From NCBI GenBank assembly GCA_002104905.1, contig MCFE01000691.1, forward strand, positions 1-44,566: a DNA stretch of 44,566 nucleotides, written 5' to 3'. The position numbers and the translations under genes were made by a program. How positions within the stretch are numbered: the stretch's first letter is position 1; each line of letters starts with the position of its first letter. This document shows positions 6,530 through 44,566 of this stretch, piece after piece. The DNA is from Basidiobolus meristosporus CBS 931.73. Its lineage: Eukaryota > Fungi > Basidiobolomycota. The notes beneath the pieces were generated by a model. That model was not told the origin of the DNA. It searched no databases and saw only the letters and a program-made list of their open reading frames with translations.

Positions 6530-6556
6530 TCCTCTCCTCTCCTCTCCTCTCCTCTC
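6530..6556. repeat. (CTCCT)n microsatellite
   Basis: About five tandem CTCCT units in the ARMT1-PPZ intergenic region. Confidence 0.85.
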
Positions 6557-6787
6557 TTAATTCTACCGTCCTCCTCGTTGAGGCACTTTGTATGCTCTGT
6601 CACACAAGTAGCCAACCCAAGTAAGGCCCATTTCCGCTCCCTGATCTGCCGCTCTCACCATTCTTTTGTGTGCATCCCGAGTCTCCTTCAATACTAACCC
6701 TCCTCAATACAGCAGCTCCACACACCCACGCACACGTACACGCACACACACACGCACACGCACTCCTAGTAGCTTGTCTTCCGCTCC

Positions 6788-8076
6788 ATGGGAAACAATT
6801 CCTCCAAAAAATCCAAGGGTACCTCCGACAACGAGGCTCCAGTTGGAAGGTCGCGAAGGGGCTCCATCCCCTTTATCGACAACTTCAAAAGCAACGGGGA
6901 TTCCGAAGCGAATGCCAACACCCTCGAATCGATCCTTGTGCGGCGCAGAAGTTCCGTCGGCAGCAACGAGCTCGGGGTGGACGCGCCCACCACGCCCACC
7001 AGAAACTCCTTCATCTCACTATCACGACGCGGAAGCTCCGACAGACGCCGGTCCCTGAATGTGGACGATATGATCAGTCGATTACTGGAGTCCGGCTATT
7101 CCGGAACTGTCCCCAAAATCCCGTGTTTAAAGGAGACCGAGATCATGGCGGTTTGCGAGGCAGCCCGGGAGATATTCCTGTCGCAGCCAACGCTAGTCGA
7201 GATCTCGTCCCCGGTGAAGATCGCCGGAGACATCCACGGGCAGTTCACGGACCTCCTGCGCCTCTTCGACATGTGCGGCTTCCCGCCCACCGCCAACTTC
7301 CTCTTCCTTGGGGACTATGTGGATCGAGGGCGCCAGAGTCTCGAGACGATTCTGCTCCTGCTGTGCTACAAAATCAAATACCCCGAGAATTTCTTTCTGC
7401 TCAGAGGCAACCACGAATGCGCCAATGTCACTCGAGGTATGATTGTTCACACATGGGGTGCGTCCTTCTTGTGTTAAGTGTATTTTCTGTAGTGTACGGC
7501 TTCTTTGACGAATGCAAACGGAGATGTAGCATCAAGATCTGGAAGACCTTCATCAATGTGTTCGACACCCTGCCCATAGCCGCCCTCGTTGCTGGCAAGA
7601 TCTTCTGTGTCCACGGGGGGCTTTCGCCGCATCTTCATCATATGGACGACATCCGGAAGATCGAGCGTCCGACCGATGTCCCGGACGAAGGCCTGCTGAT
7701 AGATCTGCTTTGGAGCGATCCCAGTGAGACGGTTGCCGACTGGGAGGACAACGAGCGAGGCGTGTCCTACTGTTTCGGGAAAACGATTGTAAACGAGTTC
7801 CTTGCCACGCACGAACTGGACCTCGTATGCCGGGCCCACATGGTGGTGGAGGATGGCTACGAATTCTTCAACGGCCGCACACTAGTGACGGTGTTTTCCG
7901 CGCCCAATTACTGCGGAGAATTCGACAACTACGGAGCGGTGATGAGCGTGAATGAGGACCTGCTGTGTAGCTTCGAGTTGCTGAAGCCTGTAGATACGCC
8001 CAAACTCCGCCCGGGAAGCCTGCAAGGGGCCCCCTCGTCCCCGCCAGCTCAAGACGCGAAAGCGTCTTCGTTGTAG
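6788..8076 (+). CDS. PPZ1: PP1-family Ser/Thr phosphatase, PPZ type
   Basis: Starts MGNNSSK (N-myristoylation-like). PPP motifs GDIHGQ, GDYVDRG and RGNHE. PPZ-type ANVTR|VYGF across the 56-nt intron at 7437-7492, plus [13 protein letters not shown] and [11 protein letters not shown]. Confidence 0.9.
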
Positions 8077-8259
8077 AGCAGCCAAAATAGAGATTGTCAC
8101 ATATACGTAGATTTCGATATGTTTCCCCCTTTTTGTACACTCCACTCCACCCCTATAGTTCTACTCTGTTTTTCTCCATATTCTCCTCAATATCCACCAC
8201 TCACACGCTTTAACTAAAAGAATGCTTTATTGAACCTAAAGAACCCGCACACAGATGGT

Positions 8260-10497
8260 TCATTGGTGCGCACTCAACATGCGCGCACAATCGAAGTCCC
8301 ATTTGGCTCGCCATTGATTGGCCTTGCACTGCTCCTTAGTCCACGGGTAACCGTAGGTGATTGGGCTGAATATCAGGTAAACGTAGAGCACGGTGAGCAT
8401 CATGGTGAGCACGAGCATGGTTCGTGCTCTGAAGTGCAGGGGGCGAATCAGGTGGTCCAGAGTTGTGCACGTCAGCAGGATTGCGAAATACAACGCCGGT
8501 AGATAATGATGAAGGAAAAGCTGACGTGACATCAGGAAGAATGGGAGGAAGTGCAGGGCCCAGCCCACGAAGTAGAGCCCCACCGAGGATAACCAACGAT
8601 GTAGCGTGTCTAGGTTGGGGGTTAGTGAGAGTCGTGTTGCACTCCGGTTCAATTACCACTTACCATCTTGGTAGCCACGCTGGCGACGAAGCACCAGGAT
8701 CCCTCCGAAGAAGCCGCTGAGTCCCAGACACAGGGTGGTGATCCACCAAACGACTGGGTTGCCCAGGAGATAGACTTGTGAATGCTCCTTTCCCCAGAAA
8801 CTTATCCCTCGCCTCAGCAAGGGCCAATCAGCAGGCCGAGAGCCATATGGATGATACGACGCCAGCCCGGCATTGATCTTCCACATGGTCCGGTGGAGCT
8901 CGGTGAACTTTTGCAGGAAGCTCTGGTGCGGGTAGTTCGCTTTGGCGGAGTCTTCGGGCAGACGTGCGTCGGTGACCGTGTCGACCATCCACAGAGTCTT
9001 GGCTGGTTTGGCCTGTCTCATGCAGGCGACCTCCAGCTGGTCGAATCCCCATTTGGGCAGCTTTTTCTCGCTGGAGTAGAGATCACAGCTCATCCGGGTG
9101 TGGACCAGCTTGAATTTGCTGTGGAACGCCATGAGCCGGTCTGCGGACTCCGGGACGTCCCTGTCATGGTCGTATATGACCACCTTCCAGAGATCATTGT
9201 CGTCTCCCCACTCGTAGCCGCTGACCTCGAAATGGATCTTGCTATTGCTGACCGGGGCTTTAACGCTGTGGCTGTGCAAGCGTTTGTTGGTGACCGAGTG
9301 CAGCAGACGTACTACGTCCCCGTTTTTCACCCACTCGAGGCCGGTTTGAGTGGTGTTCGTCTTGGCCTTGGTGATGACCCAGTCGTTGTGATAGTCTCGA
9401 TGGGAATACAATGTGACCTGTTGCTGCCGACTTCCCGATGGGTAGAAGTGTGGGTGGGAATGAAGATACCCGCTATTCGTGGCCACATGACGGATCTTGA
9501 GCTTGGCTCCGTAGGCGATGTCCCGCAAGGTGTCAGGAATGCTCCCACCCTGGAGCGAGCTACGGAACTGCGGCGACATGAAGCCGTTGCCAGTCCCACT
9601 CTTGGCCAGCCACATGAGATGCACCTGAAACAAAGACATGTAAATCGCGCCAGGCAGGAGAATCAGACACACACCTCGGGCCAGGAGCTCTCTCGCGAAG
9701 CGACTGGGGGTGATCGAGAGGTCTCCGATCAGATCCCACAGTTGGGCTAGGGTCGAGACTCCTATGGTGGCGTAGAGGAAAAGACCGACCCATTTGACAC
9801 TGCCGGTCAGCCCGAGCGAGACCCCGGTGGCAGTTAACCAGAACCACCACTTCGCAGTGAACGGGGTGGTGAGTTGGTTCTGAAAATGAACCCACGCGAG
9901 TATAGTGAGCGCGGTGAAGAACACCAGGGGAGAGTCTAGGAGTATGTGGCGGAACTGGGCAGTGTACGAGTTCTCAAAGGTGACTACGAAGGCGCCCAGT
10001 GATGCAGCCAGGTGGGAGCAGTGGGCACCGCGTAACGTAAAGTAAGCAATGGGAACAAGTAGCCAGCCTAGCACGGCAGGGAGCAGGCGCATGGCAACAT
10101 AGGGCACGTTCGGCTCGACGTAATCCAAGCCAATCTTCTCGAACATGAAGCTACCGTCGAAGCCTGTGACATAGCCGACGGCCGCAATCATCATCTTCGC
10201 CAGCGGCGGATGAACATCCATGAAAAACTCGCGTTTGATGTACTTGCTAGCGAACCCGCCGAAATGGACCTCGTCAAACACCACAGAACTGGGCTCCGAT
10301 ATCCGGTAGAATCGCACCAGCGCAGCGATCAAGGTGATGGCCGAAACCACCGCCAGGTGGGATGGGCGAACGGTGGCCGGAGCGGACGCTTCGAACCCCT
10401 TCAACTTCCCATTGTTGTCAAGCTCGACCGCCCCGTGAAAGTCCACCCCCTTGTCAAGATTCTTGCGTTTACGCACCGAGGGTACAATTGCCACCAT
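8260..10497 (-). CDS. PMT1: Dolichyl-phosphate-mannose protein O-mannosyltransferase, PMT1 subfamily
   Basis: VVFDEVHFGGFASKY...MDVHPPLAKM, MIR domains (YLHSHPHFY, RLHSH, QLEVAC), C-terminal LFLHHYLPALYF. One short intron near 8610-8663. The start is taken as the first in-frame ATG (10497); the ORF-track start at 10569 is TTG. Confidence 0.93.
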
Positions 10498-10798
10498 CCG
10501 AAGAGGAAAAGTATGGCGGAAAAATAAAGCAGCTGGACTGGAAAGTGGCGTATATTTATTCGGATTCAATCATATAAACATTGACGTGCACCATTGACAA
10601 CAACTTCTTATTTTTATGACTGTTGATGCCTAGTGCCTGCCAATCGTTGCGAGATGCTATGACAACGGTCAAGCTAAAATTAGCCAGAAGAGGATGCTTT
10701 TAATTTTGTATAGAGACTGTATATTAAATTGTACTGCTCCCTGAGGATTACGTGATGGGAGGAAGAAAGGTATATGTGAGCGTGATAGCAAGACGGCA

Positions 10799-13653
<2,855 letters not shown>

Positions 13654-13984
13654 GTGTTTATCCAGCGAAGTACAGACAGAGGAGGGAAATATGTCTACAG
13701 GTCAGGAAGCGGCTTTATCAAATAAAGATAAAATCGTTTCGGGCTTATTTAATGCTGGATTTGGTGTTAAATCAAGCAGGCAATTTGATTAGCACCTGCC
13801 AGACCATTTGCCCCAAACGCAATGCCCATTCCCAGCGCACAATCAAGTCTAGATCAGAGTGACGCGTTGGGTCTGATTGCTGCCAGCACCGGTCGAGAAT
13901 GGGGGGAGATTGATCTACACTGGTGAATATTCCATATTTCAGATGAGCAGGAACCCTTGAGCCCAAGCACTTTATTTTTGAACT

Positions 13985-14947
13985 ATGACTATTGACCAAG
14001 TCCCCGTTCTCCCACCAGCCCAGCCCGCACCCATGTCCCTTCCAGAACTATCCAAACTCTCTCTCGAGCAAACAAGCGAATCACACCCTGTCTCCGAACC
14101 AGATCCACACGGAGGGGACCAACCTCAGTCCCGAGCAGACCCAAGCCCCCAAGAGGAGGACGACATGGTCACAGTGTTCACCGATCCGGCCAACTTCAAC
14201 GTCAAGCATCCTTTAAATAGCTCTTGGATACTCTGGTACGACAATCCTGGGAAAAAGACCAACCAGCACAGTTGGTCCCAAAACTTGAAGCAGATCATTT
14301 GCTTCGACACAGTCGAGGATTTCTGGGGGTAATGTTCTTAGCCACCCACGCTGCTCAGCGTTGACAACTAAACCGAACCCATTTCCTTTCTCTACGCGCA
14401 GAATATGGAACAATCTGATTCCGATCAGCGACCTGAGCGCCGGCTCGAATTACCACTTCTTCAAAGAAGGGATCAAACCCATGTGGGAAGACCCAGCCAA
14501 CGACAAGGGAGGAAAGTGGGTTATTCAGCTACCGAGGAAGACAGGGGAGCAAATCAATCAGCTCTGGCTTTACACGGTATGTTCGGTGTGTTGTTGCCCA
14601 GTGGGCTAGGGGTATTGATTCCGGTCTGTGCAGGTTCTCTCATGTATAGGCGAATCCTTTGCCTACGAGGATGAGATCTGTGGCTGTGTTGCGTCCATCC
14701 GTAAAGGCTTCTACCGGCTGGCTCTGTGGACTCGGTCTTCTGATGACCAGGAGATATGTCTATCTATTGGGTATGTACTTTGCTCACAGTATCGCTCAGA
14801 GCCACTCAACGAACAAGCCGTTTTACTCTCTGTAGGACACATCTGAAGGAGACATTGTCCCTTGGGCCCAACCAAAGCCTAGGCTTCCAGGCACACTCCG
14901 ATGCATCCAGAAGTGGCTCGTTCAAGAAAGACCGCTTTGTTGTTTAA
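13985..14947 (+). CDS. Translation initiation factor eIF4E (class I), 4 exons
   Basis: KHPLNSSWILWYD, TVEDFWG, NYHFFKEGIKPMWED, GGKW, LWLYT and YRLALWTR; the conserved Trp set is present. Canonical introns. Confidence 0.96.
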
Positions 14948-15082
14948 CCACAATCCCCTAGTCAGATAAACCATCAACAAACCCCATTCAATGAAAATGT
15001 AGATGTAAATGAATGCCATTTCAATGTTTAGTTTAAGGTGGCGACATGGAGCAATTAGTTGGATTACAATTTATACAGCATT

Positions 15083-17359
15083 TTACGATTGTCCAACGGA
15101 TGGAAGCAAATCAATAGCCACGGCCTCCATATTCTGAAATATACTGACCATTTCCTGCTTGTCCGGAGGTTGCGGTGTTGCTTGGGTGTTGCTTGGGGTG
15201 TTGCTTGGGTATTCATTGTATCTCTGAGGGGGATAATAACTGTTGCCTGGCTGAGAGTAGGGAGGATACGCTGCGGAGGCGGCTTGTTGGCCGTAGGCCT
15301 CCCCGCCGCTTGAAATTGACTGGCTGCGCTGTTGGTGAGGCCTGTAAGGATCCATAGAGCCTTCGGGTGGGTAGACGGAGCCTGGTCTGGTCTGTGCTGC
15401 GGTGCTTCCGTATGAATAGCTGTTGCTTCGGCTGAGAGATGGGTTGTACATCGGCTGGGGCGGGTACTGTCCATACGCCGAGTCTCGAGAGAGATTGGCA
15501 GGTAAATAGGGATTAGCTTGATGTCGGGCTAGGATGCTGATAAATAACTCAGTCGAGCAAAGCAGATTTGGATATGAACCAATACTCACTGTTGCCGTAT
15601 CTAGCTACTGACGACTCCATCAAATTGTTGTAGGTCGACCGAGCTTCGTGAAACTTCTCGTTCAGCCCAATCAAATCATCTAGAACCTTTGGCTCAGTAA
15701 CTGCAAACCAGCTGGTGATCAATGCCCCCCACTAACCTTTCTTACGGCCATAAGACCCGATCAACTTGACCAACTTTGGGCGCAGGGAGAGGGAAATGTT
15801 GTAAAGTGTCTGTGATGGACCAAGGGTTACCAACCACCATCCATGGTGTACGCACGGGCACGCTTGTTTACCTGAAGCTCTTCGTTCTCCGTCAAGTGGT
15901 CCCTGTGAGGGTCGATTTTACCGAGCACCTGGAGCAACCTATCAACGTTATGCGCCTCAGCCATGACCTCTTCCTCATCCTCCTGGTGGGGCGAGGAGCC
16001 ATGTTGCGATTCTGGTAGCTTTTCCTAAGGCGAAGCCTGAATCAACGGAACCGCTAAGGCGAACTACAGTGATGCTGTGCAACTTACAACATAGTTTACT
16101 GGGAAGATCCCAATTCGACCCCTTAAATCACCTTTCCACCACTCCTTGTACTTGGTCTCGACAACTGTGATTACATCCCCCTTGTAAAACCCTAGCTCTC
16201 CGCTCTCGGTAGCCTTGAAGTCAAAGAGAGCTCTAACCCGGGTGGCCTCTAGCGACTGCTTAGGCTCGATTTTCTGAAAAATATGGTCACGCACCATTCA
16301 CACACCAAAAACGTAACGCGTTAAGAGAGGCAATACCTTCGCTTGGGCTCCATTGTTCGTGGCAGCGCCTGTGTATGCGCTACGCTGCTGAAATAAATTT
16401 CCATTAGCATTTGCGTGCTCCCGAACGATGGTTCATGAACTCGTTATTTACATAATTTTTGCGACTTTCATTCTCTGATAGCGATAACGCCAATGCAAGC
16501 TGTAGCTCGTCTTCCTCCTTAAGCTTATCCAATTCGGACTAGAAATTCGCCTATATGAGTCTCGTTCACTTTGGAATCATGTATGAGGTAGACAACACAG
16601 TACCTGCGTAGGCTTTTTGGGGGCTTGGGGTGTGGGAAATTGGTAATCTAAAGAGAGGTTGAGAAATCAAGAACAGCACCTCCACATAGCAGAAAGAAGC
16701 ATACTTTGTTCTCTCAGTTGGGAATATGTCTCTTGCATTAAGCTCAAGGTGGAATCATTGCGAAATTCGAAATTCCATTGTTGGATAAGTTCAAGTATTC
16801 TGTTCTTAACGAGCTCGTGGACATTCTACGAACGAAAAAATATTAAGTACTTCCTCCACGGCGGCTACTGTTGATGCTGAATATGTCTGCTTACACGATC
16901 ATTTAACATTCGAACGAGGTGAGTGGTGAAGGCCCTAGAGCAGATTTCCCGATGCACTTCGATTCCGCAGTTTTTTACCAAAGCCTCCGTCAGCTACAGG
17001 AGGGGATGTGAGCCATCATGGAGAACTCTCAAGTAAAGTCTATGCGCTTACAGTCAAAGCATAAAGAAGCACATTGGCGTTACGATGTGTCAAACGTTTG
17101 GAGACCGCAGCGACACAATCTCTGCCTCTGTATACCAAATAATTAGAGGGCCTTCGCGTGAAGATGCTACAACTGCTTCTTACCCGTTGGCGGTTTTATT
17201 GACTCTGTCGCAGACGGCCAAAATGAGCTCCCAATCATCAGACGTTAGATTCTCACTAGTAGCATTGGCTAGTGAGAGTTAATTAGCAGCACGATCCAAC
17301 GAAAATAGCTAGCTGTACTTACCAACTGCCTCATCAAAAGGATTAGCATTCCGAAACAT
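15083..17359 (-). CDS. HSE1: ESCRT-0 subunit Hse1/STAM (VHS-UIM-SH3), multi-exon
   Basis: ATG 17359 MFRNANPFDEAV. VHS: ATSENLTSDDWELILAVCD, VKNCG. UIM: EEDELQLALALSLSE. SH3: VRALFDF...WWKGDLRGRIGIFPVNYV. P/Q/Y-rich tail. Confidence 0.93.
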
Positions 17360-18946: not shown

Positions 18947-19114
18947 GTTCAATTTGCTGTTTAGTTGTGATAGGCTGCTCACATTGTTGTTTAGCTATTC
19001 AATTTCCTGTTTAGTTGTGATAGGCTGTTCACATTGTTGTTTAGCTATTCAATTTCCTGTTTAGTTGTGATAGGCTGTTCACATTGTTGTTTAGCTATTC
19101 AATTTCCTGTTTAG
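18947..19114. repeat. 50-bp tandem repeat, 3 full copies plus a partial
   Basis: Unit TTGTGATAGGCTGTTCACATTGTTGTTTAGCTATTCAATTTCCTGTTTAG starts at 18965, 19015 and 19065, with one mismatch in copy 1. Confidence 0.95.
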
Positions 19115-19365: not shown

Positions 19366-20595
19366 ATGTCGCTTCACCTTGGTCGTCTTCTGGTTTGTCC
19401 ACCGAGAGCGAGGTTTTCTTCTCTTTCCACCATAAGGCAGGTTAAATTCTCCACCCTTCACTCTAGATATGCTTTCTCGAGAACGCTATTCGGTCAAAAA
19501 GGCTGCATTCAAGGGATCCCAGGAGTAAGGACTAGAGAGAGAGCCTTTCTCCCGTGCATAACGGAAATACGCTCCACCGTATTGCATTCCACCATCCCAC
19601 AAGAGGAGGAGAATACTCCAGTGATTGCTGATAAAGCCGGAGTAAGATGGAAGCCTATGCCAGAGTTAACCCTTGCCAAGCTACCCCAAGTTTACAAAGA
19701 GCTATCGAAAGCAAAGCTTGCCGCCCTGGTAGCTTTGACCACCATGTGTGGCTATGCTGTCGCTCCAGAAGCTGTAAATCTCACCACCATGTTTTGGACT
19801 ACAATTGGCACCACCCTTTGCATCAGCTCGGCCAACGCATTCAATCAATGGGTAGAGATACCATACGATGCGCAAATGAGTAGAACTCGCAATAGAGTTC
19901 TAGTACGCCATGCTGCCTCGCCGCTTCACGCATTTGCATTCGGGTCTGTCACTGGCTTATCCGGTATCAGCATGTTGGCGTTTGGTGTGAGTCCGTTAGT
20001 CGCCGCGTTAGGTGCGGCCAACATAGTTCTTTACTCGGCCATCTACACGCCACTCAAACGTATCTCCATTGCCAACACTTGGGTAGGAGCCATCGTAGGC
20101 GGCATCCCACCCATGATGGGCTGGGCTGCTTGCACAAATGGCTTAGAGCCGGGGGCTTGGTTGCTCGGATTTATTTTGTACGCGTGGCAATTTCCCCACT
20201 TCAATTCATTGAGCTGGAATCTGCGTGCTGATTACTCCAAAGCCGGGTTTAGAATGATGGCAGTGACGGATCCTGCACTTAATGCGCGTGTATCTCTGCG
20301 CTACAGTCTTGCATTACTCCCACTATCCTGTATAGCACCCATGCTTGACGTCACTACCTGGTGGTTTGCGGCGGATTCATTCGTGGTCAATGCAATCCTG
20401 GCTCATGGGGCATGGCGTTTCTGGAGGCATTCGGACGAAAAGACAGCCCGAAAGCTGTTCTTCGGCTCTCTCATCCATCTCCCACTCATCCTTGCTCTGT
20501 TGATGATTCATAAGAAGAGCAAAAATGAGGAGCAAAAGAAGCTACCGTATGCCGAGCTGAAAAACGCGCAAATCATCAAGCGAGAATTGAGCTGA
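19366..20595 (+). CDS. COX10: Protoheme IX farnesyltransferase (heme O synthase), single exon
   Basis: NAFNQWVEIPYDAQMSRTRNRVL, YTPLKR, WVGAIVGGIPPMMGWAA and WQFPHFNSLSW. Confidence 0.97.
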   Translation: MSLHLGRLLVCPPRARFSSLSTIRQVKFSTLHSRYAFSRTLFGQKGCIQGIPGVRTRERAFLPCITEIRSTVLHSTIPQEEENTPVIADKAGVRWKPMPELTLAKLPQVYKELSKAKLAALVALTTMCGYAVAPEAVNLTTMFWTTIGTTLCISSANAFNQWVEIPYDAQMSRTRNRVLVRHAASPLHAFAFGSVTGLSGISMLAFGVSPLVAALGAANIVLYSAIYTPLKRISIANTWVGAIVGGIPPMMGWAACTNGLEPGAWLLGFILYAWQFPHFNSLSWNLRADYSKAGFRMMAVTDPALNARVSLRYSLALLPLSCIAPMLDVTTWWFAADSFVVNAILAHGAWRFWRHSDEKTARKLFFGSLIHLPLILALLMIHKKSKNEEQKKLPYAELKNAQIIKRELS

Positions 20596-31759: not shown

Positions 31760-32574
31760 CTCCTCTGTGGGGAAGCCGTATTGCTGGTTAAGCGCTAATG
31801 CCCTATAAAATATGAAAACCCTTTCAGAACACTGCTATGCTATAGGTTCATATGGCTCGGAGAAAACCTTCTACCTTTTCCGGGGTGTTTTTTTACAACA
31901 CTTGGGTTATGGATCCAGTTAAAATTTACAAGAGCCCAAAAGTGGGGCAAAGATATGAAGAAATCCGACGAAACTTTACAAGATCAGGTAGTGTTAAGAC
32001 TCTCCAAACGATTAAATCATGGAATCAGATTCCATTTTATCTGTCTTTCAGTTATGAATACGGTATATACATCCTGCATGATCGCGGAATTTTTCTAACT
32101 TGAATCACTTCCTGAGTTGTTATTTGATTCGGCAGTGAAGTATGTTTGAGCAAAAACTATATATTACTGGTCGGAGTGACTTCTTAAATTGTGGGAGAAG
32201 ATAGACGATTGCTTTCCATTTACTATACTATGTGTTGTTTGGATAATTGGGCTATGGTGAGGGTCCTGTCTATCCAGTGTATTCCTTGTAATTTAAATGC
32301 TTCAAACATTGGAGCAGGAAGCGGCTCTCAATGTTAAAAATATGCAATTAATGATGAAGAGTTAGGGGTACTGGGCAGAAATCAACAAGAGGCAACGTGA
32401 TAAAAAGCTGAAACAAGCTGCTTGCCTCCGAAGTACCGAATCAATTTTAATTCTTTATAAGTTGCATGATTACCAGCCATATCCCGATTGATCTTGAGCA
32501 CTTGTTTCCATTCAAAGCTTTTTGCTATATCAAGTCAGTTGGGTTAGATTTAAGTTACTATACAGTGACCAGGA

Positions 32575-33933
32575 ATGAAATTCGATACAGTCTTATGGCT
32601 CTTGCCTCTTCCTTTCATGGTACACGGTGCATGTCAAGGCGTTCGGAGGCGATCAGAGATTCGAGAATTGAGTGAGGCAGAAATGTCCTCTTTCATTGGC
32701 GCCATTTTGGAGCTTAAAAGAAGAGGAAAATATGACGGATTCGTAGTGCAACATGTGGATGGTTTTCCTTTCGCACATAACTCGCCAGCGTTTTTTCCCT
32801 GGCATCGAAAATATCTACTCAACTTTGAGGATGCTCTTCGTGAGATTGATCCCGATGTTACCGTGCCTTATTGGGTAAGTATTGCTGATCACCTGTATGC
32901 CAGTTTTATAGCTGAAATTTCAATAGGATTGGACTCTAGATTCGCAAGCTCCAGAAGCCAGCCCAATATTTACATGGTTTGGTGGGAACGGAGAGGGTGA
33001 AGATAACTGCTTAAAAAGTGGGCCATTCGCAAATTGGCGAACGTCAGTACCTGAACAAAAATGCCTACAGCGGCAGTTTGACCTGCAAAATGGGTTGATT
33101 TCACCATTACAATCCCCGGAGTTACTGCATGAAGATATAGCCACATCAAAGAATTATTCAACATTACAAACAGTCATCGAGATGGGAACTCATAGTTTGG
33201 TGCATGTTGGTATTGGTGGCGAAGGAGGAGATATGAGCTTTGAATACAGTTCAAATGAGTAGGTATTACATTCTTTCGTGTGCAAATGTTGCAAAACTAA
33301 TTCGTTGTAAACTTTTCCCACCAATGTAGCCCGATATTTTGGCTAGTCCATTCTTTTGTGGATAAAATCTGGTCAACTTGGCAGTCATTTGATCCAAAAA
33401 ATGCGCTAAGCTACGATGGAATTAATCCGGCAACAAACAAATCAGTTGCATTAACTGATGTACTGGACGTTTTCGGAACACAAGTCAAAGACGTAATGAG
33501 TACGAAAAAGCTATGCTACCGATATTCTCAAACACCAGCAATTCCAATGCCAAATAACGACACGTCTATCAGCAGACCTAGTCATTCAGGATCCTCGGAG
33601 AACGATATAATTAATATCATAAAGCGTAGGTTTGGTGAAGTTGCCACTTCAAATTCCTATAGAAAACGAACAATACTATATGGAGACATACCGGCATATT
33701 TCGATATTTATGGTGGGCCAACGCCTGATGACCGAAGCGAAAAATATCAGCTTAGAGTTCCAATGGGGCTACCGCAAAAATTCATCAATAAGATGGGATA
33801 TCCTACTAGAACAGTCCGAACAATTGAGAATACACATGGGAGATTAACAAGAATAATCAATCTAAACAAGGAATATATTTCACCAGTTTCCCTAGCAAAA
33901 AAGCTACAAACCGAATTGAGTATTTTTGGTTGA
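32575..33933 (+). CDS. Secreted tyrosinase (type-3 di-copper), 3 exons
   Basis: Signal-peptide-like start. CuA: QH...AHNSPAFFPWHR, VPYW|DW. CuB: THSLVH, N|DPIFWLVHSFVDKIW. TGA at 33931-33933. Confidence 0.92.
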
Positions 33934-34263
33934 AGTTCAATTTTTGTAGCGATTTCAATGTATAGTCACCACTTCCCCAACATTCTATAGCCAGACACAC
34001 ATATGCTGGCTTCTTTCCAGCCAGCCACCATGTAAATAACGACTAGATTCTACGCCGGGGAGTCTGGAGCCGCCACCTTCAAAAGCACGGTCGCCTCCCT
34101 CGAGAACTGTCCAGAAATACCGATGATGCATCCTCACTCACCCACCATTACCCGGCAAAGGACGGCTGGGCCCCAGGGGTGGAGGGATCTGGCGCAGAGC
34201 ATATCCACAACCCATCACCATGATAGGCCAAAAGCGGGGAGTGAGAAAAATGAAAAATAAATG

Positions 34264-34334
34264 TGCGCTAGCTGGGAGTCGAACCCAGGCCAACTGCTTG
34301 GAAGGCAGTTATTCTACCGCTATACTACTAGCGC
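34264..34334 (-). tRNA. tRNA-Gly(TCC)
   Basis: GCGCTAG acceptor stem, ACTGC-CT-TCC-AA-GCAGT anticodon arm, GGTTCGACTC T-loop, downstream oligo-T. Confidence 0.96.
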
Positions 34335-34679
34335 CTGTTAGTTATATAAAAAATTAGAAATAATATTCTATTAATTTTAATTGGTACTACTGGCAATGCT
34401 TTCCGGCAAACCTGTCGGACAGCCTCCCTAACTTACATCCAAATCCTTGGATAGTATGCCAACAATCAATGATCGGGCTCAGCCTGGATACAACCATGAA
34501 AAATCGAATAAGGCATGTATCCAAAGGGGGAGGGACGAACCAAAAAAGGGACCATTTCCCTTGTACGAAAGTAGGGAGTTGTGTAGGAATGAGCATCCTC
34601 ATCGAATAGGCAATGTAAAAGCGATAGATTCTAGTGAAACAAAAGGTGTACAGATATAGAAGTTAAAAAGAAAAAGTAT

Positions 34680-34752
34680 CGCCCAAAGGGGGGCTCGAAC
34701 CCCCGACCCTAAGATTAAAAGTCTCATGCTCTACCGACTGAGCTATTCGGGC
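34680..34752 (-). tRNA. tRNA-Lys(TTT)
   Basis: GCCCGAATAGCTCAGTCGGTAGAGC, TGAGA-CT-TTT-AA-TCTTA, GGTTCGAGCC; intronless. Confidence 0.96.
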
Positions 34753-35109
34753 TCACACAATCTAGTGAGATCTATGTATATGAATACCTTCAAATAATAT
34801 GTACGCATACATGCACACGTATGTGCTCCAATATAGCAAAACCAATTTCCCAGCCATACCACTGTTAGCTGGACAGTCACCTCCACCTCCTACTAGAGCC
34901 TGCCACTTGTCTGCAGCGGAATGATACACAAACGCTGATGTGAATTGGGTTAGGGGATTCATGAAATACAAAGCCACGGAGACCTATACCTACCAGGCCT
35001 ACGCCAGTAACAGGTATAACCTCTGAGCCATTCCCCATGGAAGAACTACCGTGTGGGAAGTAATCATAGGGCTATAAGAATTTTCTACAAAGAGTACATC
35101 ATCAGTAAT

Positions 35110-35191
35110 GACACTTTGGCGGAGTGGTTAACGCGGTGCCCTGCTAAGGCATTTCCCTATGGGAGCGCAGGTTCGAATCCTGCAGGTGTCG
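35110..35191 (+). tRNA. tRNA-Ser(GCT)
   Basis: 82 nt with a long variable arm (TTCCC-TAT-GGGAG), TGCC-CT-GCT-AA-GGCA and GGTTCGAATCC; T6 terminator. Confidence 0.96.
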
Positions 35192-35201
35192 TTCCTTTTT
35201 T
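35192..35201 (+). terminator. Pol III oligo-T terminator after tRNA-Ser (representative)
   Basis: TTCCTTTTTT directly follows the tRNA. Each of the nine tRNAs has a run of at least 4 T shortly downstream on its own strand. Confidence 0.8.
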
Positions 35202-35808
35202 TCATGTATTCTCATTGATACGAAATCATTTTAATGTATTGGAACAGCATTATCTTAGCAATGGTGGGGTATAGCATAGTAGATAGATAGTCTACTGGAG
35301 GTGCTGATGGCCGAGTTCAAATCACGGAGGATTGATAGCGGCCGGCTGTTTGGCCTTAGAAATAATACACCCGGTTATGCAAAAATTTTTCATAGTTGGC
35401 ATAGTGTTTGCTGGGCTCCCCAACTTTAAAATAATTCTCAATTTTTAGCCAACCCTAGACGTGAGACACAGATGTATAAAATGCAACCATGAAGCTACCA
35501 GGATTCCACAAAAGGCACCAGATACTTGTAACAAAGCAATTCGTTTCCTGCTTATGATTAGAAGTTTGATCTGATGCATGATATTGGAGCACCAAACCTC
35601 GTGACAAGGAGATACTATGGATCGCGTAATTTCATAGGAGACGCCATGGCAAGTTTCAAGCTTCAAAGAATGACAAGAAATGCGTATAGATCTCCAAAAC
35701 AGCCTATGTGGCAGGAGAGTAGATTAAAGCCAAGAGAATCGATCATACAGTCTTGGAGAGGAAACACAGCATGATAAACGGCAAGCGCAAGAAAGCTAGG
35801 TATATAAT

Positions 35809-35880
35809 TCCTCATTGGTCCAGTGGTTAGGATTTCTCGCTTTCACCGAGACGGCCGGGGTTCGATTCCCCGATGGGGAA
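35809..35880 (+). tRNA. tRNA-Glu(TTC)
   Basis: TCCTCAT/ATGGGGA acceptor, TCTCG-CT-TTC-AC-CGAGA, GGTTCGATTCC. Confidence 0.96.
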
Positions 35881-36252
35881 TAATCTTTTGTGTACTTTCG
35901 TTCATAGCTTTTTACTAAAGAGAAACGACCCGTTTCAATGGCAGTATACGGTAATTCTTGGGCGGACTCCTTCATGCGGGCCAAAAGCTGCCCATATATA
36001 AAAATAAATACAAACATATCCCACCAATATCCTATGTTGAAATATGGGCCCAGCCCCAGAGCGTCCAAGCGAGCTTACCTAAAGGTATTCCGAGGAGGTC
36101 CTGCCACAGAATGTGTGATCACCCTAGCGAAATGAGAGCAAGAATTCTCGGCTGTCACAAAATCTACATCGAGTACAGCACACAAGTAACCATCCGTTAG
36201 TATACAAACTTACAGTATGCCAATAGCTTATTTGCCAAAAAAGTAAAATACT

Positions 36253-36326
36253 CACCCCCGGTGGGACTCGAACCCACAATCCTCAGATTAGAAGTCTGAT
36301 GCCTTATCCAATTAGGCCACGGGGGC
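36253..36326 (-). tRNA. tRNA-Arg(TCT)
   Basis: GCCCCCG acceptor, TCAGA-CT-TCT-AA-TCTGA, GGTTCGAGTCC. Confidence 0.96.
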
Positions 36327-36674
36327 AATTAGTAACAGAAGAAGCGGTTGCGTGCTAAAGACTAAATCGATTTCCTATTTACCTTTCTAGACATTCTAAT
36401 GCAAAGGCATTGTACATGATATTCCACCTGTATTGGAGCTAAGTGCTCTTCCACTGTAGAAATTTATCTACAGTAGGCCTGAGCTCAAAAACAAACCAGT
36501 AGTATGCTATACTTTGCTCATCTTAGCAGAGTGCTCCAGATAGTCAGATTATGAACTCAGCATATTCTTACCAATAAGCAGTGCTATGAAGATAGAAGCT
36601 TATGTAGGCATTGCCTTCTACAAAAAAATCTACTTGACAGAAACGTAGACTGCAACCCGCCAGGTGCAAAAGAT

Positions 36675-36747
36675 TGCTCCCTGCCAGGATCGAACTGGCG
36701 ACCTTCAGATTATGAGACTAACGCGCTGCCAACTGCGCTAAGGAAGC
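36675..36747 (-). tRNA. tRNA-Met(CAT), elongator type
   Basis: TTAGT-CT-CAT-AA-TCTGA with the T-T 31:39 mismatch typical of fungal elongator Met. G1 start and a GTTCGATC T-loop, so not the initiator. Confidence 0.94.
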
Positions 36748-37048
36748 TTCTAAGCTACGGGGAAATTGGTTGCTATTTGTCATTTTTGAGTCTCCTGTAG
36801 TGGTACGAGAATGTACCACCAGCAGTTATGAATAGAGCCGGGCTCAATTGTACTCATCAGCGCTAATATCGATTTGAAACTCGAGCAAAAACCGGAGACT
36901 GCATATCCATGCTAGGTTCTTTGTATTGTCCATATAGTTACTCCTCTTCAATAGATACATAAAAACATACAATCCCTTGAGGAAGTGTAGTTGATATGTA
37001 ACAATGTACAATGGTTCACCGAAATACATCAAAAACCAAAAAGAGATC

Positions 37049-37120
37049 GGGCTCCAGCGGGAATTGAACCCGCGACCTCTCGCACCCAAAGCGAGAATCA
37101 TACTACTAGACCATAGAGCC
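37049..37120 (-). tRNA. tRNA-Pro(TGG)
   Basis: GGCTCTA acceptor, CTCGC-TT-TGG-GT-GCGAG, GGTTCAATTCC. Confidence 0.96.
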
Positions 37121-37286
37121 GGATTTATGGGTAGTAGCTTTACGATTTAGATCATTTTCAGTCCGTAGTAAACCATATAGTCAAAACGATCTCGGATTTT
37201 ACTTAATTTGTAGAGTCAGATCAAGGAGGAGAGATTCATTACCTCCAAAATATAGGTTTTCTCTACAAGAACTAAAATCAAAAGAG

Positions 37287-37358
37287 CTCTCAGACCGGGA
37301 ATTGAACCCGGGTCTCCCGCGTGACAGGCGGGGATACTTACCACTATACTATCTGAGA
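37287..37358 (-). tRNA. tRNA-Asp(GTC)
   Basis: TCTCAGA acceptor, CCCGC-CT-GTC-AC-GCGGG, GGTTCAATTCC. Confidence 0.95.
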
Positions 37359-37612
37359 TTACATATTTATTATGTACATACTTTTCTGCACAAACCTAAT
37401 ACTCTATATTATGGCGGAGCTCCGCCAAAAACTGCATAATCCTACGTAAACGAATGGTAGGGGAATCCTCTTGAATATCTGGGAACACGGAAATAAAAAT
37501 ACTAATCCATACTCTGATAGATCGAGTTACCCTTCTGGAAACCCATATGATGCTATTAAAAAGGACAGTGATAAAAAAAGTCCTGGTAAATGCTGAATCC
37601 CAACAAAAGATG

Positions 37613-37684
37613 AGGTCTCGCCGAGAATCGAACTCGGATTACAGGATTCAAAGTCCTGGGTGCTAACCATTACACCACGAAACC
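37613..37684 (-). tRNA. tRNA-Gln(TTG)
   Basis: GGTTTCG/CGAGACC acceptor, CAGGA-CT-TTG-AA-TCCTG, AGTTCGATTC. Confidence 0.96.
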
Positions 37685-38020
37685 GCCTTTGTTTCATGTA
37701 AAAATTTGTAGCGATTTCAATGTATAGTCACCACTTCCCCAACATTCTATAGCCAGACACACATATGCTGGCTTCTTTCCAGCCAGCCATCCATGTAAAT
37801 AACGACTAGATTCTACGCCGGGGAGTCTGGAGCCGCCACCTTCAAAGCACGTCGCTCCTCGAGAACTGTCCAGAAATACCGATGATGCATCCTCACTCGT
37901 GATCTAGCATATACTGGTGGCTGGCTGAAAGAGCAGCATATGTGTGTCTGGCTATAGAATGTTGGGGGAAGTGGTGACTATACATTGAAATCGCTACAAA
38001 TTTTTACATGAAACAAAGGC

Positions 38021-38092
38021 GGTTTCGTGGTGTAATGGTTAGCACCCAGGACTTTGAATCCTGTAATCCGAGTTCGATTCTCGGCGAGACCT
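38021..38092 (+). tRNA. tRNA-Gln(TTG)
   Basis: Inverted copy of 37613-37684. Confidence 0.95.
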
Positions 38093-38346
38093 CATCTTTT
38101 GTTGGGATTCAGCATTTACCAGGACTTTTTTTATCACTGTCCTTTTTAATAGCATCATATGGGTTTCCAGAAGGGTAACTCGATCTATCAGAGTATGGAT
38201 TAGTATTTTTATTTCCGTGTTCCCAGATATTCAAGAGGATTCCCCTACCATTCGTTTACGTAGGATTATGCAGTTTTTGGCGGAGCTCCGCCATAATATA
38301 GAGTATTAGGTTTGTGCAGAAAAGTATGTACATAATAAATATGTAA

Positions 38347-38418
38347 TCTCAGATAGTATAGTGGTAAGTATCCCCGCCTGTCACGCGGGAGACCCGGGTT
38401 CAATTCCCGGTCTGAGAG
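38347..38418 (+). tRNA. tRNA-Asp(GTC)
   Basis: Inverted copy of 37287-37358. Confidence 0.95.
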
Positions 38419-38584
38419 CTCTTTTGATTTTAGTTCTTGTAGAGAAAACCTATATTTTGGAGGTAATGAATCTCTCCTCCTTGATCTGACTCTACAAATT
38501 AAGTAAAATCCGAGATCGTTTTGACTATATGGTTTACTACGGACTGAAAATGATCTAAATCGTAAAGCTACTACCCATAAATCC

Positions 38585-38656
38585 GGCTCTATGGTCTAGT
38601 AGTATGATTCTCGCTTTGGGTGCGAGAGGTCGCGGGTTCAATTCCCGCTGGAGCCC
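38585..38656 (+). tRNA. tRNA-Pro(TGG)
   Basis: Inverted copy of 37049-37120. Confidence 0.95.
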
Positions 38657-38957
38657 GATCTCTTTTTGGTTTTTGATGTATTTCGGTGAACCATTGTACA
38701 TTGTTACATATCAACTACACTTCCTCAAGGGATTGTATGTTTTTATGTATCTATTGAAGAGGAGTAACTATATGGACAATACAAAGAACCTAGCATGGAT
38801 ATGCAGTCTCCGGTTTTTGCTCGAGTTTCAAATCGATATTAGCGCTGATGAGTACAATTGAGCCCGGCTCTATTCATAACTGCTGGTGGTACATTCTCGT
38901 ACCACTACAGGAGACTCAAAAATGACAAATAGCAACCAATTTCCCCGTAGCTTAGAA

Positions 38958-39030
38958 GCTTCCTTAGCGCAGTTGGCAGCGCGTTAGTCTCATAATCTGA
39001 AGGTCGCCAGTTCGATCCTGGCAGGGAGCA
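38958..39030 (+). tRNA. tRNA-Met(CAT), elongator type
   Basis: Inverted copy of 36675-36747. Confidence 0.94.
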
Positions 39031-39378
39031 ATCTTTTGCACCTGGCGGGTTGCAGTCTACGTTTCTGTCAAGTATATTTTTTTGTAGAAGGCAATGCCTA
39101 CATAAGCTTCTATCTTCATAGCACTGCTTATTGGTAAGAATATGCTGAGTTCATAATCTGACTATCTGGAGCACTCTGCTAAGATGAGCAAAGTATAGCA
39201 TACTACTGGTTTGTTTTTGAGCTCAGGCCTACTGTAGATAAATTTCTACAGTGGAAGAGCATTTAGCTCCAATACAGGTGGAATATCATGTACAATGCCT
39301 TTGCATTAGAATGTCTAGAAAGGTAAATAGGAAATCGATTTAGTCTTTAGCACGCAACCGCTTCTTCTGTTACTAATT

Positions 39379-39452
39379 GCCCCCGTGGCCTAATTGGATA
39401 AGGCATCAGACTTCTAATCTGAGGATTGTGGGTTCGAGTCCCACCGGGGGTG
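39379..39452 (+). tRNA. tRNA-Arg(TCT)
   Basis: Inverted copy of 36253-36326. Confidence 0.95.
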
Positions 39453-39824
39453 AGTATTTTACTTTTTTGGCAAATAAGCTATTGGCATACTGTAAGTTTG
39501 TATACTAACGGATGGTTACTTGTGTGCTGTACTCGATGTAGATTTTGTGACAGCCGAGAATTCTTGCTCTCATTTCGCTAGGGTGATCACACATTCTGTG
39601 GCAGGACCTCCTCGGAATACCTTTAGGTAAGCTCGCTTGGACGCTCTGGGGCTGGGCCCATATTTCAACATAGGATATTGGTGGGATATGTTTGTATTTA
39701 TTTTTATATATGGGCAGCTTTTGGCCCGCATGAAGGAGTCCGCCCAAGAATTACCGTATACTGCCATTGAAACGGGTCGTTTCTCTTTAGTAAAAAGCTA
39801 TGAACGAAAGTACACAAAAGATTA

Positions 39825-39896
39825 TTCCCCATCGGGGAATCGAACCCCGGCCGTCTCGGTGAAAGCGAGAAATCCTAACCACTGGACCAATGAGGA
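39825..39896 (-). tRNA. tRNA-Glu(TTC)
   Basis: Inverted copy of 35809-35880. Confidence 0.95.
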
Positions 39897-40513
39897 ATTA
39901 TATACCTAGCTTTCTTGCGCTTGCCGTTTATCATGCTGTGTTTCCTCTCCAGAACTGTATGATCGATTCTCTTGGCTTTAATCTACTCTCCTGCCACATA
40001 GGCTGTTTTGGAGATCTATACGCATTTCTTGTCATTCTTTGAAGCTTGAAACTTGCCATGGCGTCTCCTATGAAATTACGCGATCCATAGTATCTCCTTG
40101 TCACGAGGTTTGGTGCTCCAATATCATGCATCAGATCAAACTTCTAATCATAAGCAGGAAACGAATTGCTTTGTTACAAGTATCTGGTGCCTTTTGTGGA
40201 ATCCTGGTAGCTTCATGGTTGCATTTTATACATCTGTGTCTCACGTCTAGGGTTGGCTAAAAATTGAGAATTATTTTAAAGTTGGGGAGCCCAGCAAACA
40301 CTATGCCAACTATGAAAAATTTTTGCATAACCGGGTGTATTATTTCTAAGGCCAAACAGCCGGCCGCTATCAATCCTCCGTGATTTGAACTCGGCCATCA
40401 GCACCTCCAGTAGACTATCTATCTACTATGCTATACCCCACCATTGCTAAGATAATGCTGTTCCAATACATTAAAATGATTTCGTATCAATGAGAATACA
40501 TGAAAAAAAGGAA

Positions 40514-40595
40514 CGACACCTGCAGGATTCGAACCTGCGCTCCCATAGGGAAATGCCTTAGCAGGGCACCGCGTTAACCACTCCGCCAAAGTGTC
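40514..40595 (-). tRNA. tRNA-Ser(GCT)
   Basis: Inverted copy of 35110-35191. Confidence 0.95.
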
Positions 40596-40952
40596 ATTAC
40601 TGATGATGTACTCTTTGTAGAAAATTCTTATAGCCCTATGATTACTTCCCACACGGTAGTTCTTCCATGGGGAATGGCTCAGAGGTTATACCTGTTACTG
40701 GCGTAGGCCTGGTAGGTATAGGTCTCCGTGGCTTTGTATTTCATGAATCCCCTAACCCAATTCACATCAGCGTTTGTGTATCATTCCGCTGCAGACAAGT
40801 GGCAGGCTCTAGTAGGAGGTGGAGGTGACTGTCCAGCTAACAGTGGTATGGCTGGGAAATTGGTTTTGCTATATTGGAGCACATACGTGTGCATGTATGC
40901 GTACATATTATTTGAAGGTATTCATATACATAGATCTCACTAGATTGTGTGA

Positions 40953-41025
40953 GCCCGAATAGCTCAGTCGGTAGAGCATGAGACTTTTAATCTTAGGGTC
41001 GGGGGTTCGAGCCCCCCTTTGGGCG
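40953..41025 (+). tRNA. tRNA-Lys(TTT)
   Basis: Inverted copy of 34680-34752. Confidence 0.95.
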
Positions 41026-41370
41026 ATACTTTTTCTTTTTAACTTCTATATCTGTACACCTTTTGTTTCACTAGAATCTATCGCTTTTACATTGCCTATT
41101 CGATGAGGATGCTCATTCCTACACAACTCCCTACTTTCGTACAAGGGAAATGGTCCCTTTTTTGGTTCGTCCCTCCCCCTTTGGATACATGCCTTATTCG
41201 ATTTTTCATGGTTGTATCCAGGCTGAGCCCGATCATTGATTGTTGGCATACTATCCAAGGATTTGGATGTAAGTTAGGGAGGCTGTCCGACAGGTTTGCC
41301 GGAAAGCATTGCCAGTAGTACCAATTAAAATTAATAGAATATTATTTCTAATTTTTTATATAACTAACAG

Positions 41371-41441
41371 GCGCTAGTAGTATAGCGGTAGAATAACTGC
41401 CTTCCAAGCAGTTGGCCTGGGTTCGACTCCCAGCTAGCGCA
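41371..41441 (+). tRNA. tRNA-Gly(TCC)
   Basis: Inverted copy of 34264-34334. Confidence 0.95.
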
Positions 41442-41590
41442 CATTTATTTTTCATTTTTCTCACTCACCCACCATTACCCGGCAAAGGACGGCTGGGCCC
41501 CAGGGGTGGAGGGATCTGGCGCAGAGCATATCCACAACCCATCACCATGATAGGCCAAAAGCGGGGAGTGAGAAAAATGAAAAATAAATG

Positions 41591-41661
41591 TGCGCTAGCT
41601 GGGAGTCGAACCCAGGCCAACTGCTTGGAAGGCAGTTATTCTACCGCTATACTACTAGCGC
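41591..41661 (-). tRNA. tRNA-Gly(TCC)
   Basis: Unit 3 copy with the same cloverleaf. Confidence 0.95.
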
Positions 41662-42005
41662 CTGTTAGTTATATAAAAAATTAGAATAATATTCTATTAA
41701 TTTTAATTGGTACTACTGGCAATGCTTTCCGGCAAACCTGTCGGACAGCCTCCCTAACTTACATCCAAATCCTTGGATAGTATGCCAACAATCAATGATC
41801 GGGCTCAGCCTGGATACAACCATGAAAAATCGAATAAGGCATGTATCCAAAGGGGGAGGGACGAACCAAAAAAGGGACCATTTCCCTTGTACGAAAGTAG
41901 GGAGTTGTGTAGGAATGAGCATCCTCATCGAATAGGCAATGTAAAAGCGATAGATTCTAGTGAAACAAAAGGTGTACAGATATAGAAGTTAAAAAGAAAA
42001 AGTAT

Positions 42006-42078
42006 CGCCCAAAGGGGGGCTCGAACCCCCGACCCTAAGATTAAAAGTCTCATGCTCTACCGACTGAGCTATTCGGGC
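42006..42078 (-). tRNA. tRNA-Lys(TTT)
   Basis: Unit 3 copy. Confidence 0.95.
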
Positions 42079-42435
42079 TCACACAATCTAGTGAGATCTA
42101 TGTATATGAATACCTTCAAATAATATGTACGCATACATGCACACGTATGTGCTCCAATATAGCAAAACCAATTTCCCAGCCATACCACTGTTAGCTGGAC
42201 AGTCACCTCCACCTCCTACTAGAGCCTGCCACTTGTCTGCAGCGGAATGATACACAAACGCTGATGTGAATTGGGTTAGGGGATTCATGAAATACAAAGC
42301 CACGGAGACCTATACCTACCAGGCCTACGCCAGTAACAGGTATAACCTCTGAGCCATTCCCCATGGAAGAACTACCGTGTGGGAAGTAATCATAGGGCTA
42401 TAAGAATTTTCTACAAAGAGTACATCATCAGTAAT

Positions 42436-42517
42436 GACACTTTGGCGGAGTGGTTAACGCGGTGCCCTGCTAAGGCATTTCCCTATGGGAGCGCAGGTTC
42501 GAATCCTGCAGGTGTCG
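42436..42517 (+). tRNA. tRNA-Ser(GCT)
   Basis: Unit 3 copy. Confidence 0.95.
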
Positions 42518-43133
42518 TTCCTTTTTTTCATGTATTCTCATTGATACGAAATCATTTTAATGTATTGGAACAGCATTATCTTAGCAATGGTGGGGTATAG
42601 CATAGTAGATAGATAGTCTACTGGAGGTGCTGATGGCCGAGTTCAAATCACGGAGGATTGATAGCGGCCGGCTGTTTGGCCTTAGAAATAATACACCCGG
42701 TTATGCAAAAATTTTTCATAGTTGGCATAGTGTTTGCTGGGCTCCCCAACTTTAAAATAATTCTCAATTTTTAGCCAACCCTAGACGTGAGACACAGATG
42801 TATAAAATGCAACCATGAAGCTACCAGGATTCCACAAAAGGCACCAGATACTTGTAACAAAGCAATTCGTTTCCTGCTTATGATTAGAAGTTTGATCTGA
42901 TGCATGATATTGGAGCACCAAACCTCGTGACAAGGAGATACTATGGATCGCGTAATTTCATAGGAGACGCCATGGCAAGTTTCAAGCTTCAAAGAATGAC
43001 AAGAAATGCGTATAGATCTCCAAAACAGCCTATGTGGCAGGAGAGTAGATTAAAGCCAAGAGAATCGATCATACAGTCTGGAGAGGAAACACAGCATGAT
43101 AAACGGCAAGCGCAAGAAAGCTAGGTATATAAT

Positions 43134-43205
43134 TCCTCATTGGTCCAGTGGTTAGGATTTCTCGCTTTCACCGAGACGGCCGGGGTTCGATTCCCCGATG
43201 GGGAA
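43134..43205 (+). tRNA. tRNA-Glu(TTC)
   Basis: Unit 3 copy. Confidence 0.95.
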
Positions 43206-43577
43206 TAATCTTTTGTGTACTTTCGTTCATAGCTTTTTACTAAAGAGAAACGACCCGTTTCAATGGCAGTATACGGTAATTCTTGGGCGGACTCCTTCAT
43301 GCGGGCCAAAAGCTGCCCATATATAAAAATAAATACAAACATATCCCACCAATATCCTATGTTGAAATATGGGCCCAGCCCCAGAGCGTCCAAGCGAGCT
43401 TACCTAAAGGTATTCCGAGGAGGTCCTGCCACAGAATGTGTGATCACCCTAGCGAAATGAGAGCAAGAATTCTCGGCTGTCACAAAATCTACATCGAGTA
43501 CAGCACACAAGTAACCATCCGTTAGTATACAAACTTACAGTATGCCAATAGCTTATTTGCCAAAAAAGTAAAATACT

Positions 43578-43651
43578 CACCCCCGGTGGGACTCGAACCC
43601 ACAATCCTCAGATTAGAAGTCTGATGCCTTATCCAATTAGGCCACGGGGGC
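43578..43651 (-). tRNA. tRNA-Arg(TCT)
   Basis: Unit 3 copy. Confidence 0.95.
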
Positions 43652-43999
43652 AATTAGTAACAGAAGAAGCGGTTGCGTGCTAAAGACTAAATCGATTTCC
43701 TATTTACCTTTCTAGACATTCTAATGCAAAGGCATTGTACATGATATTCCACCTGTATTGGAGCTAAATGCTCTTCCACTGTAGAAATTTATCTACAGTA
43801 GGCCTGAGCTCAAAAACAAACCAGTAGTATGCTATACTTTGCTCATCTTAGCAGAGTGCTCCAGATAGTCAGATTATGAACTCAGCATATTCTTACCAAT
43901 AAGCAGTGCTATGAAGATAGAAGCTTATGTAGGCATTGCCTTCTACAAAAAAATATACTTGACAGAAACGTAGACTGCAACCCGCCAGGTGCAAAAGAT

Positions 44000-44072
44000 T
44001 GCTCCCTGCCAGGATCGAACTGGCGACCTTCAGATTATGAGACTAACGCGCTGCCAACTGCGCTAAGGAAGC
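44000..44072 (-). tRNA. tRNA-Met(CAT), elongator type
   Basis: Unit 3 copy. Confidence 0.94.
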
Positions 44073-44373
44073 TTCTAAGCTACGGGGAAATTGGTTGCTA
44101 TTTGTCATTTTTGAGTCTCCTGTAGTGGTACGAGAATGTACCACCAGCAGTTATGAATAGAGCCGGGCTCAATTGTACTCATCAGCGCTAATATCGATTT
44201 GAAACTCGAGCAAAAACCGGAGACTGCATATCCATGCTAGGTTCTTTGTATTGTCCATATAGTTACTCCTCTTCAATAGATACATAAAAACATACAATCC
44301 CTTGAGGAAGTGTAGTTGATATGTAACAATGTACAATGGTTCACCGAAATACATCAAAAACCAAAAAGAGATC

Positions 44374-44445
44374 GGGCTCCAGCGGGAATTGAACCCGCGA
44401 CCTCTCGCACCCAAAGCGAGAATCATACTACTAGACCATAGAGCC
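44374..44445 (-). tRNA. tRNA-Pro(TGG)
   Basis: Unit 3 copy. Confidence 0.95.
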
Positions 44446-44566
44446 GGATTTATGGGTAGTAGCTTTACGATTTAGATCATTTTCAGTCCGTAGTAAACCA
44501 TATAGTCAAAACGATCTCGGATTTTACTTAATTTGTAGAGTCAGATCAAGGAGGAGAGATTCATTG

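Follow-up and report, generated by a model that had tools for sequence, protein, structure and literature searches.

The window analysed here, 44,566 nucleotides (nt) long, is the whole of contig MCFE01000691.1 from Basidiobolus meristosporus CBS 931.73, as deposited in GCA_002104905.1, which we take to be a Joint Genome Institute (JGI) PacBio assembly. Its right-hand end, beyond a tyrosinase gene, is occupied by a repeat whose unit carries nine different transfer RNA (tRNA) genes. Analysis with ARAGORN located 25 tRNA genes within 34263-44445 and none in the first 34 kilobases (kb) of the window. The nine kinds follow one another in a constant order through 2.8 rounds. The first cassette arm, defined by ARAGORN, a repeat finder and Rfam, spans 34236-37740 on the forward strand, where its end takes in the first 38 nt of a spacer segment referred to below as X. 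It comprises the genes Gly-TCC (-), Lys-TTT (-), Ser-GCT (+), Glu-TTC (+), Arg-TCT (-), Met-CAT (-), Pro-TGG (-), Asp-GTC (-) and Gln-TTG (-), so that the orientations are mixed (- - + + - - - - -).

The identity of these genes is secure. All nine score between 58 and 70 bits with the Rfam tRNA model, for which the gathering score is 29; sequences resembling the A and B boxes are present in each, and four or more consecutive T residues begin 3-7 nt 3' of each. The Met-CAT gene is of the elongator type, as judged from the T-loop in the sequence. A wider Rfam scan of 33800-38000, with E values up to 0.1, revealed no 5S and no other known RNA, the only matches beyond tRNA being two in antisense that fall below threshold. 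No tandem repeat was detected between the genes or in the spacers by Tandem Repeats Finder (TRF) at scores of 30 or more over 33900-37950, and the internal repeats of the unit consist only of the similarity of one tRNA gene to another. Exact look-ups and a homology search with the open reading frames (ORFs) of the array gave no match. The initial annotation of this DNA had named the same nine kinds, in constant order and mixed orientations, each with A and B boxes and its own T-run, and as ARAGORN, Rfam and the reading of boxes and terminators all agree, we conclude that the gene content was correctly described.

Two further features of the cassette were recorded. The spacer between the Ser and Glu genes (35193-35807) is 615 nt long, the other spacers measuring 165-370 nt, and it holds no tRNA, Rfam family or repeat. 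Uridine occupies the first anticodon position, U34, in six of the nine tRNAs (Gly-UCC, Lys-UUU, Glu-UUC, Arg-UCU, Pro-UGG and Gln-UUG); in yeast, these U34 tRNA species bear Elongator-dependent U34 modifications. Not all of the codons read by the U34 tRNAs of the cassette are rare in six long ORFs of the window: AAA (35%) and GAA (33%) are the minor codons of their pairs, but CAA (61%) is the major one and AGA (22%) the commonest Arg codon.

The arrangement of the repeat is more complicated than a simple tandem array. Segment X in its first copy (33939-34139, forward strand) ends in the heptamer CTCACTC (34133-34139) and is followed by a second spacer segment, Y, of 96 nt (34140-34235), which forms the loop between this heptamer and GAGTGAG at 34239-34245. 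Cassette arm copy 1 comes next and leads into the first of two strand switches (switch 1, 37741-37964), in which forward X is succeeded by its own reverse complement. Arm copy 2 (37965-41469) is inverted: it lies on the reverse strand, it is complementary to copy 1 over 3505 nt with an identity that rounds to 100%, and its tRNA order is mirrored. At switch 2 (41460-41562) the sequence returns to the forward strand, with 41460-41686 identical to 34133-34359. Arm copy 3 (41563-44566, forward strand) is truncated by the end of the contig 121 nt past tRNA-Pro.

According to the repeat finder, the direct repeat period in the window is therefore about 7,326 nt, with the middle copy flipped. A spacing of 3,762 nt is limited to the segment X of about 200 nt, which occurs at 33939-34139 and recurs directly at 37703-37898, immediately after tRNA-Gln. 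A head-to-tail unit would consist of X, Y and the nine genes and measure 3,762 base pairs (bp), and one such closure is present within the window. These observations modify the earlier account, in which the region was a macro-repeat array with a unit of about 3.76 kb running off the end of the window. The repeat does continue to the contig end, the window being the entire contig, and X does recur at 3,762 nt; the copies in the window, however, alternate in direction, and the implied repetition in one orientation is not seen there. The inversion at 37965-41469 had been missed.

The copies are nearly identical, spacers included, as had been claimed. Over about 3.5 kb, three variant sites set copy 1 apart from the other two. 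Two are substitutions: copy 1 has G at 36443 and C at 36630, where both of the other copies have A. The third, at 35752-3, is a small indel or transposition. Between copies 2 and 3 there are two one-base homopolymer indels only, with no substitution, and these two copies could be one unit read on both strands. Because copies 2 and 3 share variants against copy 1, at least two real variants of the unit exist, which speaks against one cluster duplicated by the assembler. As copies 1 and 2 differ at three sites, switch 1 is not one molecule simply folded back on itself. The variant-free arms expected of a fold-back are seen at switch 2, where there are homopolymer indels only, and not at switch 1.

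Both switches are located at a CTCACTC heptamer. At switch 1, forward X reaches CTCACTC at 37892-37898 and turns at 37899/37900, and reverse X resumes at about X position 118, leaving a loop of about 80 nt. At switch 2, the inverted arm ends in CTCACTC at 41460-41466 and then runs directly into forward Y. This second heptamer is the reverse complement of the GAGTGAG that ends Y, and it has the same continuation as the CTCACTC of X at 34133-34139. Since pairing partners exist on each side, both switches use the heptamer at the end of X, whatever the process that produced them. Folded as DNA, the motifs at the ends of X and Y make up a 10-of-11 inverted repeat that encloses a loop of 93 nt, and the middle of X holds GGGGAGT, which resembles the Y-end motif. 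The stability of the whole X-end/Y-end fold is not above that of shuffled sequence (z = 0.12). A missed SMRTbell adapter was considered as the source of the turns and rejected, as no sequence resembling the adapter is present at either.

The sequence surrounding switch 1 is of a different quality from the rest of the repeat. When the zone 37788-37960 (about 170 nt) is compared with X copy 1, nearly all of the differences are one-base indels. On the forward side there are one insertion, four homopolymer deletions and zero substitutions; on the reverse side there are four clear indels, and the final 25 nt or so align poorly. Most of the indels are homopolymer contractions, and they become denser nearer the turn. 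Real divergence would include substitutions, and the zone consequently resembles a consensus derived from very few long reads. Taken as it stands, the sequence suggests that switch 1 rests on few supporting reads.

Inverted duplicates at contig ends are a common artefact of long-read assembly, and the end of this contig has much in common with fold-back chimeric long reads: its final part is an inverted duplicate, the loop is short and asymmetric, the turn shows microhomology and one of the switches has a poor consensus. It departs from them in having two turns in series and in that copy 1 is not identical to copy 2. These two departures lead us to conclude that more than one read, or a real molecule, was involved.

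Copy number was approached through the word content of sequencing runs. Of the words sampled from 32500-38400, shares of 0.86 and 0.80 were present in two runs of about 110 million letters from the source sample of the assembly, and a share of 0.67 in two runs of about 1 million letters from that sample (X3 and X4). The share expected for this interval is 0.716 for an ideal head-to-tail array, 0.662 for the arms alone and about 0.24 for the flank, and array and flank together would give at least 0.9. The value of 0.67 matches the 0.66-0.72 expected of the array alone, from which it follows that the tiny runs X3 and X4 contain the array and, apparently, little or no flank. For the interval 33950-34264, which runs from the distal part of X through Y into the arm and takes in both junctions (X-to-Y and Y-to-arm), all of the sampled words (29/29) were present in each of four tiny source-sample runs (X20-X23). 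Runs bearing the same species label and made from another sample contained 0.08 of the words of 32500-38400 and 0.00 of the spacer words, shares of the size that tRNA genes would give. We infer that the whole unit, its head-to-tail closure included, is high-copy.

Overall, we consider it probable, with moderate confidence, that the locus is a genuine high-copy head-to-tail array, distorted in the contig by fold-back long reads or by rare rearranged molecules. The unit would be an element of 3,762 bp, resembling ribosomal DNA (rDNA) in its organisation and made up of the two spacers, X and Y, and nine separate tRNA genes. Each of the nine would be transcribed independently by RNA polymerase III, by means of internal A and B boxes and with a T-run of its own as terminator. 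The array would begin just past the stop codon of the tyrosinase gene and extend beyond the contig end, and recombination among the units would keep them nearly identical; the nine tRNA genes would thereby be present in equal numbers. In the proposed mechanism each switch is a fold-back at a hub made of a short inverted repeat, in which the CTCACTC that ends X may pair with the GAGTGAG that ends Y or with the similar motif in the middle of X. They would most likely have come from fold-back (palindromic) long reads, or otherwise from rare rearranged molecules, and the assembler, lacking a unique path through the repeat, would have followed the fold-backs. The parts of this reading that we infer are the high copy number, the head-to-tail order of the bulk of the units and the artefactual origin of the switches. 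The original suggestion of an rDNA-like, concertedly evolving array that had collapsed in the assembly fits the word content of the runs and the existence of two unit variants; the inverted middle copy had been overlooked.

Several points weigh against the array that we favour. Two complete consecutive head-to-tail units are found nowhere in the window. The sequence at switch 2 is clean, so good read support for it is possible, and copy 2 is not an exact reverse complement of copy 1. The argument from the tiny runs assumes that such runs keep only high-copy words. Moreover, the type of the runs was guessed ('DNA?'), and they share the sample of the assembly and hence are not independent of it.

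The alternative that survives best, and one that we nevertheless regard as unlikely, is that the units really lie as drawn, either in alternating orientations or as opposed arrays that meet at one or more fixed head-to-head points (switch 2). The clean sequence of switch 2, with the appearance of a textbook template switch at an inverted repeat, would be accounted for in this way, and because copies 1 and 2 are different variants, switch 1 joins two distinct units. There is also a precedent in Schizosaccharomyces japonicus, in which 3-kb tRNA units change direction on one side of a centromere. The indel-only zone at switch 1, on the other hand, argues against a junction that is present in every copy of the genome, and the zero substitutions between copies 2 and 3 are what would be expected of one unit read on both strands. 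The two turns are exactly one unit apart and use the same heptamer, which resembles a zigzag read more than it does a stable locus. Perfect palindromes of 3.5 kb with loops of less than 250 nt are, furthermore, generally unstable, and the spacers that close the head-to-tail form appear to be high-copy.

An extrachromosomal origin of the high-copy signal is improbable. The signal would then come from a 3.76-kb circle, or from a unit-length molecule with hairpin ends, and a single chromosomal copy would lie beside the tyrosinase gene. The high-copy closure words fit a circle as well as they fit a tandem array, and the succession forward, turn, reverse, turn, forward is how a strand-displacing polymerase would read a unit-length dumbbell; but a consensus as poor as that at switch 1 would not be expected if hairpin-ended molecules were abundant, and the unit carries neither a replication gene nor any element besides the tRNA genes.

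There is likewise only a small chance, in our estimation, that the zigzag is itself real, in the sense that units are cut or stalled at the CTCACTC hub and both ends fold back on short inverted repeats. On that supposition unit-length dumbbells with hairpin ends, or palindromic molecules, of tRNA gene DNA would exist in vivo, arising for example after fork stalling at tRNA genes, and the contig end would record one of them. In the rDNA of Tetrahymena and in yeast models, a short inverted repeat beside a DNA break primes the formation of a large palindrome. The present locus is similar in having a short inverted repeat that flanks a loop of about 100 nt; it differs in that the palindrome is the bulk form in those systems, whereas here it is apparently rare or artefactual.

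The least credible explanation is that the genome holds a single nine-tRNA cluster and that every extra copy is an assembly artefact: the copies are indeed almost identical and the contig end is palindromic, as is typical of long-read artefacts, but two substitutions common to copies 2 and 3 set copy 1 apart, X recurs after tRNA-Gln, and runs seemingly without the single-copy flank still contain the unit.

The flank of the array is formed by the tyrosinase gene (32617-33933, forward strand), a single-copy called gene with a Pfam Tyrosinase match. The repeat starts 5-9 nt past its stop codon (33933-33942), and the 3' untranslated region of the gene would fall within spacer X. The ORF of the C-terminal exon spans 33358-33933, and the orthologue in Basidiobolus ranarum ends at the equivalent residue position. 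A fasciclin protein encoded in the flank also has its closest homologue in B. ranarum, at 74% identity, and synteny with contig JASJQH010006901.1 of that species extends over six genes. There, within 1-3950 of the piece compared, the gene that comes after tyrosinase encodes an ethanolamine-phosphate cytidylyltransferase. The 15.8 kb of this locus that were compared contain no tRNA gene, and neither X nor Y finds a match in the locus; we conclude that the position of the array is not common to B. ranarum. Among the 120 matches listed for the cytidylyltransferase, there was no orthologue from the genome to which the window belongs.

Elsewhere in the window, a 50-nt unit is repeated 3.3 times with 98% identity at 18948-19114, about 250 nt upstream of a UbiA prenyltransferase ORF (19366-20595). 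The G+C content is 0.49-0.55 in positions 1-16000 and 0.40-0.46 in 16001-44566.

The initial annotation was aware of no description of such an array in fungi, and in this respect it has been overtaken by the arrays published for S. japonicus. The telomere-to-telomere assembly of that yeast contains a 5.6-kb unit in 34 copies and a 6.4-kb unit in 46 copies, each with 18 tRNA and three 5S genes, as well as a 575-kb tRNA array and the 3-kb units of six tRNA genes whose orientation is switched on one side of a centromere (doi 10.1101/2023.09.04.556195). They resemble the array proposed for Basidiobolus: these are fungal arrays of multi-kb, multi-tRNA units, repeated tens of times and collapsed in earlier assemblies, and some of the units reverse orientation across a centromere. 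They differ in that 5S genes are present and that they lie in or near centromeres among long terminal repeat (LTR) elements, whereas the Basidiobolus unit is without 5S. S. japonicus belongs to the Taphrinomycotina, which are very distant from the zygomycete-grade Basidiobolus, and homology of the spacers is not implied. Our literature search found no report of a tRNA array in Basidiobolus or other zygomycete-grade fungi, and tRNA is nowhere mentioned in a 2023 review of zygomycete-grade fungal genomes.

Outside the fungi, the best known case is Entamoeba, in which, as described in PMC2652664, tandem arrays of units with several isotypes contain nearly all of the tRNA genes, and the units are near-identical within an array. 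The arrays are put there at more than 10% of the genome, with units of up to five tRNA genes separated by short tandem repeats. Near-identical units with several isotypes, and probably their tandem order, are shared with Basidiobolus; the small gene number and the short tandem repeats of that description are not, the Basidiobolus unit having nine genes and no repeat detected by TRF. The arrays of the two organisms are independent in origin. The human tRNA array at 1q23.3 is reported in PMC4041453 as 9-43 units of 7.3 kb, each of which binds the insulator protein CTCF. Like the array proposed here, it is built head-to-tail from a multi-kb unit with several tRNA genes, and it varies in copy number; going by that report, it is set apart by its 7.3-kb CTCF-binding units. 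Large tRNA clusters arose many times in eukaryotes according to a 2010 survey (PMC2888827).

As a practical consequence, this assembly is not a reliable source of tRNA gene counts and array structures where its contigs end. If much of the tRNA set of Basidiobolus sat in a few rDNA-like arrays, this would represent a further independent origin of such an organisation, far from both Entamoeba and S. japonicus. If true, it would also provide a culturable system in which to study the equal dosage of unlike tRNAs in relation to codon demand, the upkeep of uniformity across an array and the interplay of tRNA genes with the retroelements that target them.

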